Below are positions 3,286 to 50,070 of a DNA stretch of 64,000 bases, piece after piece (position 1 is the first letter of the stretch; every line of letters starts with the position of its first letter). A program made the position numbers and the translations under genes. Under the pieces are notes generated by a model. That model saw only the letters and a list, made by a program, of their open reading frames with translations. It was not told the origin of the DNA and ran no database searches. Where the stretch lies: positions 1-64,000 of IMG/VR virus record IMGVR_UViG_3300020172_001601. One strand, 5' to 3'.

Positions 3286-4371
3286 ATGTCGAAATCCGAC
3301 AGCCAAGAACTAAATGAAATTCTGAAGAACGCCCCAGATACTCCGTCGTATGACGGAGATGGCGACTCAAATCCATGTTTCAGCAATGATATTGCTGTCT
3401 GTGGTGAACCCGTCGCCTCATTTGATCGTGGTCTGGGTGGATATTGCCAGTGGTCCACATCGGACGGCAAGCGATATATTCCATCCAGCAAGACGGCCAA
3501 GAAGCTCACGCCGGGCGTCTACGATATTCTTCACAGTAACACAATCGGTTTGTATTTTGAACAGATTCCAGTTCTCACAACTGGTTTGATCCGGTTTCCA
3601 GAAACCAATTCCGATAAGGTCGTATCTGAAATTCAGAAGTTCTGGAAAAAGGAAAACATCTTCCGCAGTTACAACCTGACTTACAAGCGTGGCATTATTC
3701 TGTGGGGACCGCCAGGATCGGGCAAGTCTTGCACAATCCAGTTGATTATGCGTGACGTTGTAGAGCGTGGCGGCGTGGTCATCAAGTTTACGCATCCCAC
3801 ATTATTCCTTGAAGGCATTCGCAAGTTCCGAGAGATTCAGCCGGACACGCCTGTTGTCGTATTGATGGAAGATATTGACAGCATCTTGGAGATGTACTCT
3901 GAGAGTGAAGTTCTCAATATCCTCGATGGCGTGAATCAGATCGAGAAGGTTGTCTTCTTGGCGACGACCAATTACCCAGAAAAGCTGGGCGCTCGTATTG
4001 TCAATCGTCCTTCTCGATTTGACAAGCGATTTAAGATCGGCCATCCGAATGCCGAAAGCCGTCGTATTTACTTTGAATACATCATCGGCAAAGACAAGGT
4101 GAAGGCTCTCAAGATCAATCTGGATCAGTGGGTTGAAGACACTGAAGAATTCAGTATTGCTCACTTGAAGGAGTTGTTCACTGCGGTTGTTATTCTCGGC
4201 GACGAATATGAGGATGCCATCGAATCTCTTTCTTTGATGAAAGAAGATAAGCCTGATTCATCCAATGATGAAGCACGGAAGTCAATGGGATTCGGAAATG
4301 GCAAGAAGGCTCGCCGTCACAAGTTGACTGCTGATGATTCATTCATGAAAGAATTAAGGGAGATGGAATGA
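3286..4371 (+). CDS. AAA+ ATPase (BCS1-like single AAA module)
   Basis: YKRGIILWGPPGSGKS (Walker A), LMEDID (Walker B), LNILDG, ATTNYPEKL..RIVNRPSRFD (SRH). Confidence 0.9.
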   Translation: MSKSDSQELNEILKNAPDTPSYDGDGDSNPCFSNDIAVCGEPVASFDRGLGGYCQWSTSDGKRYIPSSKTAKKLTPGVYDILHSNTIGLYFEQIPVLTTGLIRFPETNSDKVVSEIQKFWKKENIFRSYNLTYKRGIILWGPPGSGKSCTIQLIMRDVVERGGVVIKFTHPTLFLEGIRKFREIQPDTPVVVLMEDIDSILEMYSESEVLNILDGVNQIEKVVFLATTNYPEKLGARIVNRPSRFDKRFKIGHPNAESRRIYFEYIIGKDKVKALKINLDQWVEDTEEFSIAHLKELFTAVVILGDEYEDAIESLSLMKEDKPDSSNDEARKSMGFGNGKKARRHKLTADDSFMKELREME

Positions 4372-4913
4372 GCGAGTCAATTCTGATCTCGACCGAGTAT
4401 ACCTTGGTCATTCATACAGATGGTTTTTCGGATGCTTTCGCCAAGAAGCTCTGTGCATATTGCACAGGCTTCGTGGATGAAACCGATAGCGATCTCGAAT
4501 TTTCTGATCTGTATTATCTGGAAGAGAACATCGAAGATGATGAGTCTCCGAGAGGTCAAGTGGCCGAAGAAAAGAATCCGTTTTATGGATTTGTCGGCCA
4601 GAGGCTAGATGAAGACCAGATTTATTCTCCTTGCTGTGTCTGGCTCAATAAGCGATACGGATATAACGCCAATGGCGAATACGCCGTGCTGACCGAGAAG
4701 AATTTCGACGAATACAACTTCCCGGCTCCTTTGAGCGTTGGTATTTTCTTCGATGTGGTTCCAGAGCCGGAGCATATCTCGAAGATCAAGGAGCGGGCCG
4801 TGAAGTTTTTCGAGAAGGTCTGGCCTAAGCTCAACGATGGGGCTAAAAAGGTTACGGTCGAAGACTTTCGGTTGGTAATCCACACCAAGTACGGGGAAGA
4901 AGTGGCGGTGTGA
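4368..4913 (+). CDS. Hypothetical acidic protein
   Basis: ATGA-coupled to the upstream gene; 181 aa. Confidence 0.75.
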   Translation: MSESILISTEYTLVIHTDGFSDAFAKKLCAYCTGFVDETDSDLEFSDLYYLEENIEDDESPRGQVAEEKNPFYGFVGQRLDEDQIYSPCCVWLNKRYGYNANGEYAVLTEKNFDEYNFPAPLSVGIFFDVVPEPEHISKIKERAVKFFEKVWPKLNDGAKKVTVEDFRLVIHTKYGEEVAV

Positions 4914-4967
4914 TTTTACGTTTGAATCGGTTTTGTGGTATGGTGTAGGTAGTTCAAGGAGAACACT

Positions 4968-5840
4968 ATGCACCATCAGCAATTGTGGGAGATGCCTCTT
5001 GCACGTCGATATTTTGAATATCTCGTTCGGTTCTTCGTATTTTACAGCATCGGCATGTACCTCCTTGAGATGGAGGTTACAAAGGCTCATCATAGCGACG
5101 GATTCTGGCTCTTGAATGAGCGATTCGTCGCTATGTTTTTTACGGTGGAGTACCTTGTCCGATGGGCAATATCGGACAACAAACGGCACTTCCCGTTCAA
5201 ACTATTGTCGATAATTGACCTGATTGCCATCGTGCCTTTTTATGTCGGGTTCTTTGTTGACGATCACACGCTTGATATAATTCGCACGCTTCGAGTGTTG
5301 CGAATGTTCAAGCTGGTCAGGTACAGTCCTGCCCTGATGAACGTCATGGAAGGCATAAAAAAGGTCAAAAGCGAACTGTATGTCGTTGGATATATTGTTT
5401 GTATTGTTGTGGTGTTTAGTTCGGTTTTAATCCTGCAATTTGAAAAGGACGCACAGCCAGACAAGTTCGACAAGCCGTCCGATGCTTTGTGGTGGTCCTT
5501 CGTGACGATGGCCACAGTTGGCTATGGTGATTTGGCTCCCGTGACCCTTGCCGGTCGGGTAGTAGCGATCTTTACTATGGTCATTGGCATTGGTATATTC
5601 GGTGTGTTCGTGAGTCTCATCGGCAGCGCCCTTATAGTGACGTGGAAGGAACAACAAGATGAGCAAAGAAAATCTAATGCAAGCCTGCAATCTAAGCCTC
5701 CAGATGAAGGGCTTGGACGGCGATCCGAAATACAAGAAGCGACTGAAGTGGGAAATCGAGGAAATCTTAGCCAGGAACAAGTCGGACTATTTTTGGAACC
5801 TGTACAGCAGTCGAACACGCTATCCGCAAAATCAAAATAA
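4968..5840 (+). CDS. Voltage-gated 6-TM potassium channel (KvAP-like)
   Basis: Selectivity filter TVGYGD, pore helix DALWWSFVTMAT, S4 RTLRVLRMFKLVR, S3 IIDLIAIVPFY; AAGGAG RBS. Confidence 0.92.
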   Translation: MHHQQLWEMPLARRYFEYLVRFFVFYSIGMYLLEMEVTKAHHSDGFWLLNERFVAMFFTVEYLVRWAISDNKRHFPFKLLSIIDLIAIVPFYVGFFVDDHTLDIIRTLRVLRMFKLVRYSPALMNVMEGIKKVKSELYVVGYIVCIVVVFSSVLILQFEKDAQPDKFDKPSDALWWSFVTMATVGYGDLAPVTLAGRVVAIFTMVIGIGIFGVFVSLIGSALIVTWKEQQDEQRKSNASLQSKPPDEGLGRRSEIQEATEVGNRGNLSQEQVGLFLEPVQQSNTLSAKSK

Positions 5841-24126: not shown

Positions 24127-24133
24127 CTAAATA
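24127..24133 (+). promoter_or_regulatory. Late-type promoter motif CTAAATA
   Basis: T4-late-like; 7 nt before ATG 24141. Confidence 0.6.
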
Positions 24134-40641: not shown

Positions 40642-41321
40642 AAGTAACTGCTAAGGATTCCAGTCTGGCTGTATTGGATGAAGTCTTTGAACAAGAGCGA
40701 TTTCAATACTTTTGGAACTACTTTAATGGTTTGGAATACGCTTATAAATCAAGCACTGCTTGGCATAAAGTGTGGCGAATCAATGACGGGCAGGTTTTAG
40801 CCAGTCTGTCTTCACATCATTCAAAGGCTCCTTTTAACAGCCCAATGGATTGGATTGACCAAGCCGTGACTGCTGTGGCAGGTCAGCTTGAAGATGTGGT
40901 CGGCAAGAAGGGCGAAGACTGGAACGACATCATTTATACGCCGTACATATATCCTGCCGGAACCAAGATTTCTTGGCATGATGACACTGGATATACTGGA
41001 GCGTGTATTTTTTACCCACACCAAGAGTGGAGTCCGCATTGGGGCGGCGAGCTTTATATCGCTAAAACACCGCCTCCAGAAGAGAGCAAACAGCTTGTTT
41101 TGAATAACGCCAAGGGATCAGTGGTAGACACGATGACTCGTGATTACGTTGCTCCTCTTTTGAACGCTTATGGAATGGGAACTTACATTGCTCCGTTGCC
41201 TAATCGCATGGTGTTCACTTCGGGAGCCGTGTGGCACGCTGTCAATCGTGTAGACGTAGCGGCGGGCGACAAGATGCGATGTTCTATCGTGGCTTTCTTT
41301 TTGCCTGAGAAGGTAAGCTAG
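40638..41321 (+). CDS. 2OG-Fe(II) oxygenase (prolyl-hydroxylase-like)
   Basis: WHDD (HxD), WGGEL, PNRMVF...WHAV...R.S. Confidence 0.88.
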   Translation: MKVTAKDSSLAVLDEVFEQERFQYFWNYFNGLEYAYKSSTAWHKVWRINDGQVLASLSSHHSKAPFNSPMDWIDQAVTAVAGQLEDVVGKKGEDWNDIIYTPYIYPAGTKISWHDDTGYTGACIFYPHQEWSPHWGGELYIAKTPPPEESKQLVLNNAKGSVVDTMTRDYVAPLLNAYGMGTYIAPLPNRMVFTSGAVWHAVNRVDVAAGDKMRCSIVAFFLPEKVS

Positions 41322-41752
41322 TCAGGAATTTTTTTCATGAATTCATGCCATGCTGGATGGTCATGCACTTTAATTTTGTGCTTGGCGTAGTGGCAGGCAT
41401 AGGCCATAGCGAATAATTCTTCATCATTTTGCTTTTGGCGATCTGGGTTCTTTTTGACTACTTCGCTCCATTCTTTCTTCAATTTGGGAGTCATTTTGTA
41501 TTCCCAAACCAAGTGGGCGATTTCATGGAGCGTAGTGAATTCACGTCCGTAGTTCCACGGAGCAGCCACAACGATCTTATCCTTATGGATATAGCCAATA
41601 TGATCGTCATCGCCCTTCAGTGTATTGCCAGGGGTGTATTTGAACTTGTAGCCATTCAATAATTTTTGATGGCCCTTCGGCAGCTTAGAGATCATCGCCT
41701 TGACGTTCTCATGCTCCTCGCTTTCCAGAAATGTTCTAAATCCGTCCATCAT
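41318..41752 (-). CDS. Small zincin metalloprotease-like protein
   Basis: TTLHEIAH (HExxH) and downstream EELFA; CTAAATA at 41771-41777 and GGGAG RBS upstream. Confidence 0.75.
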   Translation of the reverse strand: MMDGFRTFLESEEHENVKAMISKLPKGHQKLLNGYKFKYTPGNTLKGDDDHIGYIHKDKIVVAAPWNYGREFTTLHEIAHLVWEYKMTPKLKKEWSEVVKKNPDRQKQNDEELFAMAYACHYAKHKIKVHDHPAWHEFMKKIPD

Positions 41753-41822
41753 GTTATTTTCTCCCTGGTGTATTTAGAACTCTCTGATGTTTTTTGTCGG
41801 CAAGCATACAATACATTATCAC

Positions 41823-42296
41823 GGCCCCATTTGGGGAGGAGTCGATTGCCTTAAACATCGAGAGCCACTTGTGGTTGGCTACAAATATTCCACGATGCGG
41901 AGTCTGCAATAAGACCTGGAGTATCATCTCCTCAAAACTGATCGCTTGTCTTTTAGCGTTAGATCAGGCCGCATGTCTATTGGCGATACAATAGCAGGGT
42001 GACGACAACGACCTTAACTGACGGACAGCCCTAAGAGAGCGGCAATCTCTTAACCGTGGTCTTGGAAGGTACGGGTATCCGTGGTAGGAGCAGAAATAAA
42101 ACACATCAACTATTGTCTGATCGAGGAAGTCCCCAATGTCGTATCGGGGAACTTTAACCCAAGCTGGCCTTGGTTAGTCTATGACGTATTTTCGACATTC
42201 TGCAATAACCAGCCCATTCTAAATGCGCCGGAAAAGAACAATTTCGTGGAAAACTGACCATCCTGGGGAGCTTGTGTAAACAAGCTCCCTTTTTTT
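41823..42296 (+). ncRNA. Large structured non-coding RNA candidate, class unknown
   Basis: About 590-nt gap without a credible ORF; more than 10 hairpins; long-range helix ttccacga(41888)/tcgtggaa(42244); ends in a strong terminator. Confidence 0.7.
42266..42296 (+). terminator. Intrinsic terminator closing the ncRNA candidate
   Basis: gggagcttgt-gtaa-acaagctccc followed by T7. Confidence 0.9.
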
Positions 42297-42339
42297 ATCT
42301 TTGATACTAAATAAGAGCAGAGAGGTTCTACATAATAAC

Positions 42340-43065
42340 ATGGCACGACAAAAACCCCAACGGCCTGAAAAGGCCACCAGCAGACGAGATACCGCAATCC
42401 CTCAAGCTCAGGGGAAACGACATCCGTTTCATCTCGAATTTCTCAATCAGGCTCAGAAAATGGCCTGGGGCGCATTCGATCAACACGATGTATTGTTTCT
42501 CTTAGGCCCAGCCGGTTGCGGCAAAACCCACTTGGCGTGTGCATTCGCCATCAGTGAAATTCTTGCGAAACGTAAGAAGAAGTGTGTTCTGACTCGACCT
42601 ATTGTTGAAGCAGGAGAGGCACTAGGCTTCTTGCCAGGAACCTTCGATGAGAAGGTTATGCCTTACATGATGCCTATGTACGACTGTATTCAGAAGTGCG
42701 TTGGTCTTGAAGGCCCTCAAAAAGAAATCATTGACCGCAGTATTGAAGTTGCACCAATCGCTTATATGCGTGGTAGAACCTTTGACAGTTCCGTGTGTAT
42801 ATTTGACGAAGCTCAGAACGCTACCAAGTCTCAACTCAAGCTATTCATGACCCGCTTTGGAGAGAATAGTAAGATCATCATCACTGGTGATCCGAATCAA
42901 AGCGATCTTCGCCCCCAGGATCAGGGCTTGATGCACATTGTCAATAAGCTCGAAGATTTACCGGGTGTAGGAGTTATATACTTCAAAGCTAGTTCTATTG
43001 TTCGTCACCCACTGATTGCAGCAATCTTGGAGCGGCTTGAAGAAAAGGCCCCAGACCAACAGTAA
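42340..43065 (+). CDS. phoH: PhoH-family ATPase
   Basis: GPAGCGKT, TRPIVEAGEALGFLPG, YMRGRTF, DEAQN, TGDPNQSD, VRHPLI. Confidence 0.95.
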   Translation: MARQKPQRPEKATSRRDTAIPQAQGKRHPFHLEFLNQAQKMAWGAFDQHDVLFLLGPAGCGKTHLACAFAISEILAKRKKKCVLTRPIVEAGEALGFLPGTFDEKVMPYMMPMYDCIQKCVGLEGPQKEIIDRSIEVAPIAYMRGRTFDSSVCIFDEAQNATKSQLKLFMTRFGENSKIIITGDPNQSDLRPQDQGLMHIVNKLEDLPGVGVIYFKASSIVRHPLIAAILERLEEKAPDQQ

Positions 43066-49492: not shown

Positions 49493-49501
49493 GGAGGATT
49501 T

Positions 49502-49801
49502 ATGTTTTCACTTTTGATTTGGATTGTCTTCGGCCTTATTGTGGGCCTTATTGCAAAAGCATTGCATCCCGGCGATGAGCCTGTGGGATGCCTATCTACC
49601 ATCGGCATTGGCGTAGGTGGATCGTTTATCGGCGGCGGCATTAACTGGATGTTAGGCATGGGCAACCATTCATTTCATCCATCGGGATTCTTAATGTCTA
49701 TTCTTGGTGGCATTGTTTGCTGCATGGCATGGCGTTGGTATACGCTCAAGACTTCTCCGACCGGGCCTAAAAATTTCTTTACAGGCAAACGATTGAAGTA
49801 A
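49502..49801 (+). CDS. GlsB/YeaQ/YmgE (transglycosylase-associated) membrane protein
   Basis: WIVFGLIVGLIAKALHPG...TIGIGVGGSFIGG...SILG. Confidence 0.88.
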   Translation: MFSLLIWIVFGLIVGLIAKALHPGDEPVGCLSTIGIGVGGSFIGGGINWMLGMGNHSFHPSGFLMSILGGIVCCMAWRWYTLKTSPTGPKNFFTGKRLK

Positions 49802-49839
49802 GTCTTGATTCAAGTTTACTCGTGGGGTAATATTCAATT

Positions 49840-50070
49840 ATGTTAGACCCTACAATCATCGAAAAACTTCGGGAGCGTTATCCCGATCTTCACCCGTTGC
49901 TTTTTCATCGTTCCGTGGAGCGTGCAAAGAGCAACGGTGATTTATTTGATATACTGGATACTATGCCCAAAAAATATCCTTTGATATGGTGTGAAGACAC
50001 TTATCGGTGGGTCACAGCTAAAGAGTTGTACTTATCTGAAGAATTTTTTGGAGAGATGAAAAGTGAATAG
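49840..50070 (+). CDS. Hypothetical protein
   Basis: Preceded by TTGATT-N17-TAATAT, 6 nt before the ATG. Confidence 0.7.
   Translation: MLDPTIIEKLRERYPDLHPLLFHRSVERAKSNGDLFDILDTMPKKYPLIWCEDTYRWVTAKELYLSEEFFGEMKSE

Follow-up and report, generated by a model that had tools for sequence, protein, structure and literature searches.

What, if anything, is encoded in the gap between two divergently oriented genes of a freshwater jumbo phage, one of which is phoH? The gap lies at positions 41753-42339 of a 64,000-nucleotide stretch (referred to here as the window), which corresponds to the first 64 kb of the 340-kb IMG/VR virus record IMGVR_UViG_3300020172_001601 (designated G000). It is bordered by a minus-strand gene for a 144-aa protein (41318-41752) and by a plus-strand phoH gene (42340-43065). 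An earlier note, made from the sequence alone, had proposed that the gap holds an unannotated structured RNA of approximately 470 nt, ending in a terminator. Each of the stems named in that note is present in the sequence where it had been placed, and we found that the RNA ends in an intrinsic terminator at 42265-42296 (+), with an 11-bp stem (42265-42290) that contains 6 G-C pairs and a 4-nt loop and is followed by a T run. The note had described the gap as the only large non-coding gap in the window, which is roughly right; a second ORF-poor stretch of similar size (49493-50062) holds plus-strand ORFs of 99 and 76 aa and is probably occupied by small genes rather than by an RNA. As set out below, the observation made in the earlier note is borne out, and we conclude with high confidence that positions 41818-42296 (+) are a free-standing gene for a genuine, conserved, independently transcribed, structured non-coding RNA of 479 nt, of a family not in Rfam, whereas the interpretation that the note placed on it is supported only in part.

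To determine whether the RNA belongs to a known class, we searched the window against Rfam 15. No family matched at gathering score anywhere in the 64 kb, only terminator look-alikes appeared in the region at E ≤ 10, and no match was obtained at E ≤ 5 in seven homologous loci. ROOL, GOLLD, OLE, raiA and HEARO are therefore not matched by their models, nor, in agreement with the earlier note, are RNase P RNA, tmRNA and group I/II introns, and the family could not be found in the papers searched. ARAGORN found no tRNA or tmRNA in the window and no tmRNA in the whole 340-kb record. An RNase P CR-I look-alike, GAGGAAGUCC at 42123, is part of a local hairpin (P11, below) whose sequence varies freely in the family. 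In addition, no match to any ribozyme family was found, there was no sign of processing in the data available, and there is no flanking exon-like context. Thus, although the size of the RNA, its pseudoknot and the invariant unpaired nucleotides of its compact core might be taken to favor a ribozyme, as the note had suggested, there is no evidence for one and we consider this possibility quite unlikely.

We next asked whether the predicted fold is more stable than expected, folding energy relative to dinucleotide shuffles having been named beforehand as a test of the proposal. For the window's sequence the evidence is weak, with z = -1.88 on the plus strand and -2.98 on the minus strand, although all 16 family members tested fold below their shuffles, with z from -0.95 to -5.24. 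Because the single-sequence score is weak, because the minus strand folds as well or better, and because a 58-aa ORF exists in the window, we entertained the idea that the gap is a spacer with chance stems, a degraded gene or a gene for a small protein. The comparative evidence that follows contradicts this idea, which we regard as very unlikely.

To identify homologues, we first used blastn against the INPHARED phage collection, which returned no match, and searched IMG/VR, excluding the window's own record, for an exact 27-mer, which returned nothing. We then obtained loci (designated with the prefix L) through the two flanking proteins, and nhmmer found the RNA in the syntenic gaps of L011 and L012, and weakly in that of L010. 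A degenerate pattern taken from the conserved core found eight more true copies in JGI metagenomes, plus four chance hits. Contigs encoding eleven of the 265 relatives of the 144-aa protein gave further members, and also close relatives that lack the RNA. Finally, a covariance model of the core (P5-P7, designated R1) picked up L034, which had not been used to build it, at E = 9e-12, together with L037 and L010, and nothing else in 68 further loci. Pattern scans had also given chance hits inside GC-rich coding regions (L079, L082, L083, L086, L088, L091, L093 and L116-L119); these were rejected by both nhmmer and R1, and R1 rejected all of the earlier pattern-only hits. A scan of genome contigs found no true member and hence gave no clue to a host or to a prophage. 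In total, we identified 18 distinct members of 218-494 nt, all in jumbo-phage contigs. They are found in phages whose PhoH proteins are only 58-79% identical. The shortest members (218 nt in L010 and about 340 nt in L012, L105 and L113) define a minimal core suitable for structure work.

All members share the same gene anatomy. A box that fits the consensus TAYAAT(AC) ends 5-8 nt before the first base of the conserved 5' end in every member; in the window it is TACAAT at 41807-41812 (+), 5 nt upstream of the RNA. Every homologue also has its own intrinsic terminator, of unrelated sequence. In G000, a TAYAATAC box with the same spacing precedes the first gene of an array of roughly 50 tRNAs (72789), which suggests that the RNA may be expressed by the host polymerase as a stable RNA. 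Note that both the assignment of the box as a sigma-70-type -10 element, from which the transcript would start at about 41818 and run to the terminator at about 42296, and this mode of expression are inferred from sequence, in the absence of a mapped start site. No ORF is conserved; the longest ORFs change frame and position between members, and indels are not in multiples of three. A Shine-Dalgarno-like GGAGG that follows the second helix has no conserved start codon behind it and is absent in L034 and L037.

To test whether the RNA has a conserved structure, we examined covariation. RNAalifold on nine full-length sequences predicted 106 pairs, 42 of them with compensatory changes. We then tested twelve helices (66 pairs) explicitly on an alignment of 15 sequences. 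Of the cells, 86.8% are canonical, as compared with 35-48% when partners were slid by 1-3 columns and with 77.0 +/- 0.7 (maximum 79) in 500 within-column permutations. Moreover, 38 pairs show double changes, as compared with 24.6 +/- 3 (maximum 33) after permutation. G-U pairs are frequent in P1, P6 and P9 and would be A-C mismatches on the other strand, which argues that the plus strand is the RNA strand.

These analyses indicate that the RNA consists of two separately closed domains. Domain 1 (41818-42060) is closed by P1, in which the very 5' end (41818-41824, AUCACGG) pairs with 42054-42060 (CCGUGGU). Each of the seven positions of P1 is canonical in 14-15 of 15 sequences, with three pair types at several positions (AUCACGG/CCGUGGU, AUCAUGG/CCAUGAU and GUCAUAG/CUAUGAC), and L034 and L037 have ACAAAC/GUUUGU. 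The hairpin P2 (41825-41836, CCCC/GGGG; 94.6% canonical, two pairs with double changes) is followed by a conserved purine-rich GGAG junction. P3 (41842-41861) has a conserved loop, UUGCCUUAAAC, of which GCC is invariant, and its stem varies as UCGAU/AUCGA, CCGAU/AUCGG, UCGGU/ACCGG and UCGUU/UACGA. P4 (41863-41880) varies as AGCCA/UGGCU, AGCCG/CGGCU and AAGCC/GGCUU, and distant members have GCUU/AAGC-type stems that MAFFT misaligns. A variable arm (41895-41974), in which the stem atgcgg/ccgcat encloses three hairpins, is shortened or absent in other members; L085 and L108 lack the third hairpin and L113 lacks most of the arm, whereas gtct/agac keeps its pairs with a CG-to-UA change. All six pairs of P5 (41977-41994) show double changes (CUAUUG/CAAUAG, CUGCCA/UGGCAG and CCGCUG/CAGCGG). 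P6 (41998-42013; strands starting at 41998 and 42011) is a 3-bp stem, GGY/RCC, around the conserved loop GACGAAAACG, and its third pair is UA in 8, UG in 4 and CG in 2 of 15 sequences. The junction that follows (42014-42031, UUAACUGACGGAMAGCCC) is unpaired and is the most conserved stretch of the family. P7 (42032-42052), which forms the core of R1, has the conserved loop GCRGCAA and a stem that varies as UAAGAGA/UCUCUUA, UGAGAGA/UCUCUCA, CAAGAGA/UCUCUUG and GCAAAGA/UCUUUUG. The strongest sequence conservation of the RNA thus lies in unpaired segments of domain 1, namely the P3 loop, the P6 loop, the 42014-42031 junction and the P7 loop.

Domain 2 (42064-42263) is closed by P8, in which 42064-42070 (GGAAGGU) pairs with 42257-42263. 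P8 varies as GGAAGAU/AUCUUCC in L100 and GUAAAGU/GUCUUUC in L113, and is 72.5% canonical on the MAFFT alignment. P9 pairs 42077-42081 (AUCCG) with 42247-42251 and is canonical in 13-14 of 14 sequences at four positions (UCCG/UGGA, AUUCG/CGAAU and UUUCA/UGAAA). P10 pairs 42090-42095 (GCAGAA) with 42198-42203, and is GCAAAA/UUUUGC in L102. The hairpin P11 (42127-42153, AAGUCCCC/GGGGAACU; strands starting at 42127 and 42146) shows double changes in 6 of its 8 pairs. Its loop contains the 5' strand (42135-42141) of an H-type pseudoknot, the 3' strand of which (42193-42199) overlaps the 3' strand of P10; the pseudoknot varies as GUCG/CGAC, GCCG/CGGC and GUGGUC/GACCAC. The conserved 3' segment UCGUGGAAAACU (42244-42263) contains the 3' strand of P9 and then that of P8.

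Most of the stems proposed in the earlier note are kept with compensatory changes: cccc/gggg (P2), tcgat/atcga (P3), agcca/tggct (P4), gtct/agac, ctattg/caatag (P5), taagaga/tctctta (P7), gcagaa/ttctgc (P10), aagtcccc/ggggaact (P11) and the pseudoknot aatgtcg/cgacatt, which is real by covariation. The stem ggag/ctcc also appears to be kept with covariation, although this was judged by eye from the aligned sequences. The overall architecture proposed in the note is wrong, however. Its long-range closing helix of 8 bp (41888/42244) forms only in the window's own clade, is absent in the distant members, and has a 3' strand that overlaps the family-wide P9; an 8-bp complement is also roughly what chance gives in a 479-nt RNA. 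The proposed stem acgg/ccgt fails on either reading. Read as 42021/42054, it fails because 42054-42060 covaries with the 5' end rather than with ACGG; read as the local hairpin 42071-42074/42079-42082, it competes with P9 and only its inner two pairs are kept. P1, P6, P8, P9, the promoter-like box and the link to phoH had not been noticed. Three mutually exclusive pairings (the local hairpin 42071-42082, P9, and 41888-41895/42244-42251) share the segment around 42079 and 42247, and position 42079 covaries with both 42074 and 42249. We cannot explain this, but it could reflect a conformational switch or a base triple.

To determine whether the RNA is expressed in nature, we turned to metatranscriptomes. 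Six runs share 31-mers with the region, and we mapped four of them, from independent metatranscriptomes, onto 41600-42500. Each gave one contig (151-261 nt, 95-99% identical) lying wholly within 41841-42258, with zero depth in both flanks. These are low-depth assembled contigs without strand information. Nevertheless, the pattern is what an abundant stable RNA of related phages would give, and not what contaminating DNA would give.

We then asked how the RNA is distributed. The family is confined to one clade of freshwater jumbo phages. In a tree of PhoH from 64 loci, all RNA-bearing loci fall in one clade; 15 of the 24 rows in a well-supported subclade carry the RNA, as does the L034/L037 pair in a sister clade. 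The most parsimonious account needs six changes of state, at least three of which are forced by well-supported branches, a pattern that means an old element lost repeatedly. Scans of whole records with R1 found exactly one copy, at the phoH locus, in the 381-kb and 459-kb records that have it, and none elsewhere. No copy was found in RNA-less records, including a 100%-complete 527-kb genome that does have phoH. In the RNA-less close relative L111 (L112 is the same region on a second contig), the whole RNA gene is missing exactly between the upstream T tract and a CTAAATA motif, leaving a gap of 90 nt (2911-3000 in L111) that looks like a clean cassette-like loss or gain. In another relative, L105, an IS605-type TnpB/TnpA pair (4087-5765) lies about 1 kb from the RNA locus.

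All 18 members lie at the phoH locus, and 15 of them sit directly upstream of phoH. In L010, the RNA stayed with phoH when a 519-aa gene separated it from the gene for the 144-aa protein. Note that part of the sampling used phoH or the 144-aa gene as bait; however, L085, L087 and L096, which were found by the pattern without regard to neighbors, also have phoH downstream. The product of phoH is a PhoH-like ATPase of 241 aa that matches only the PhoH and P-loop families (Pfam PF02562, E = 9.5e-67; PHROG 170), with no PIN domain.

Because the RNA is on the same strand as phoH, and because its terminator ends only 43 nt before the phoH start codon, we considered whether it might be a cis-acting leader, that is, a very large riboswitch-like or attenuator element whose terminator controls read-through into phoH. 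Several findings argue against this. The gene immediately downstream is a different one in L011 (C39-like peptidase) and in L012 (HD-like), where it lies between the RNA and phoH. A CTAAATA motif at 42307-42313 (+), between the terminator and phoH, is kept at this place in very diverged relatives, including the RNA-less L111, and is likely phoH's own promoter, although this role is inferred. No conserved antiterminator alternative was seen, on inspection rather than by a formal search, the 3' flank has no depth in the metatranscriptomes, and the size and two-domain build exceed those of known riboswitches. We therefore consider a cis-acting leader unlikely. The CTAAATA motif, which may be a phage promoter of phoH and of the 144-aa gene alike, resembles the T4 late TATAAATA box and lies 6-50 nt upstream of several gene starts in the window, at 41771-41777 (-), before the 144-aa gene, and at 24127, 38429 (-), 55660 (-) and 57594. 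It is not enriched genome-wide (29 copies against roughly 50 expected).

How might the RNA work? The two-domain fold is supported by covariation and the distribution was observed directly, whereas the transcription signals are read from sequence and the function, including any binding to a protein, is inferred only. We tentatively favor a stable, trans-acting folded RNA that works with a protein. The best candidate partner, proposed by analogy and with less than even confidence, is the adjacent PhoH-like ATPase, for which the RNA might serve as cofactor, substrate or regulator. The analogy is with a preprint of October 2026 (bioRxiv 10.64898/2026.10.21.760802), which reports long multistem candidate RNAs recurrently encoded next to bacterial PhoH2 (PIN + PhoH on one chain), among them COMPASS cluster 1,412,455 and sister clusters, finds different architectures in different PhoH2 lineages and proposes lineage-specific RNA partners. 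Those RNAs (357 nt) and the present family (218-494 nt) are alike in being long multistem RNAs with covariation and no known-family annotation, encoded beside a PhoH-family gene, with evidence of transcription and with lineage-specific architecture. The published RNAs are bacterial and lie next to PhoH2, the present family is found in jumbo phages next to a PhoH without a PIN domain, and the preprint does not mention phages. R1, a model of the core only, gave no hit beside the PhoH/PhoH2 genes of three bacterial genomes.

Other findings temper the proposed partnership. No experiment shows binding, and the adjacency could be inherited synteny only. phoH occurs without the RNA in most related phages, so PhoH does not need the RNA and any partnership would be optional rather than essential. 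In addition, phoH seems to have its own CTAAATA promoter, so the two genes may be expressed at different times. In L011 and L012 an unrelated gene lies between the RNA and phoH, and the phage PhoH lacks the PIN domain of PhoH2. If the RNA were nonetheless the dedicated partner of the phage PhoH ATPase, forming a ribonucleoprotein with it, which we regard as possible but doubtful, this would extend the newly noticed PhoH2-RNA pairing of bacteria to viruses and to PIN-less PhoH, and would give the first mechanistic handle on phage phoH, a common phage gene whose function is unknown. The position of the RNA at the phoH locus, together with the independent report on bacterial phoH2 genes, turns the vague question of what phage PhoH does into a testable one, namely whether PhoH binds or remodels this RNA. 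More generally, large, intricately folded bacterial and phage RNAs are rare, and each class found so far (RNase P, tmRNA, OLE, ROOL and GOLLD) has taught new RNA biology.

An alternative that we regard as doubtful, but not much less likely than the PhoH partnership, is that the RNA is a stand-alone ornate phage RNA whose job has nothing to do with PhoH. It could be an RNA-only assembly like ROOL or GOLLD, or a decoy or sponge for a host protein or defence system. Consistent with this, the RNA appears to have its own promoter and terminator, its distribution is patchy with repeated loss, as is typical of accessory genes, phoH is often present without it, its many conserved unpaired bases could make tertiary or quaternary contacts, and it appears in metatranscriptomes in which the flanking genes do not. 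On the other hand, the phoH link is constant in all 18 members, no similarity to ROOL, GOLLD or OLE was found, and there is no convincing conserved palindromic loop for self-association. A kissing interaction between the P3 loop (UUGCC) and the P7 loop (GGCAA) fits the window but, as judged by eye from the sequences, breaks in L102, L110 and L012, and was not adopted. The earlier note's comparison with ROOL and GOLLD is an analogy of size and setting only, with no sequence or structure match. Like the present RNA, ROOL and GOLLD are large, intricately folded RNAs of unknown function, found in phages or prophages of tRNA-rich genomes, each with its own transcription unit. The present RNA is smaller and does not lie beside tRNA genes, the tRNA array of G000 being about 30 kb away. 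With stable protein-binding bacterial RNAs (6S RNA, Y RNA/YrlA and CsrB type), the RNA would share a trans-acting role that rests on the fold rather than on antisense pairing. As in those RNAs, both of its ends are locked in helices, and it may be expressed like a stable RNA, since it shares its promoter type with the tRNA array. It has no sequence or structure similarity to them and no 6S-like central bubble, and GGA motifs are no more frequent than expected, which led us to reject the idea of a CsrA sponge.

The protein genes at the locus have features of their own. The 144-aa protein has a HEIAH motif and no Pfam, PHROG or PDB sequence match; only the ESM Atlas gave a lead, placing it near ATLF/Peptidase_M90-type zincin folds, and its 265 relatives are nearly all viral. 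The phoH genes of several close relatives (L097, L098, L099, L105, L106 and L111) are interrupted by LAGLIDADG/Hint inteins, giving products of 600-886 aa, whereas the window's phoH has no intein. Outside the window, G000 contains two further TAYAATAC boxes (125944 and 172195), which could mark other stable-RNA genes. It also carries 52 tRNA genes by ARAGORN (72800-101233, 154670 and 182011-182778), most of them in one array, and two of these have a CUA anticodon (amber suppressors), which hints at stop-codon reassignment or suppression.
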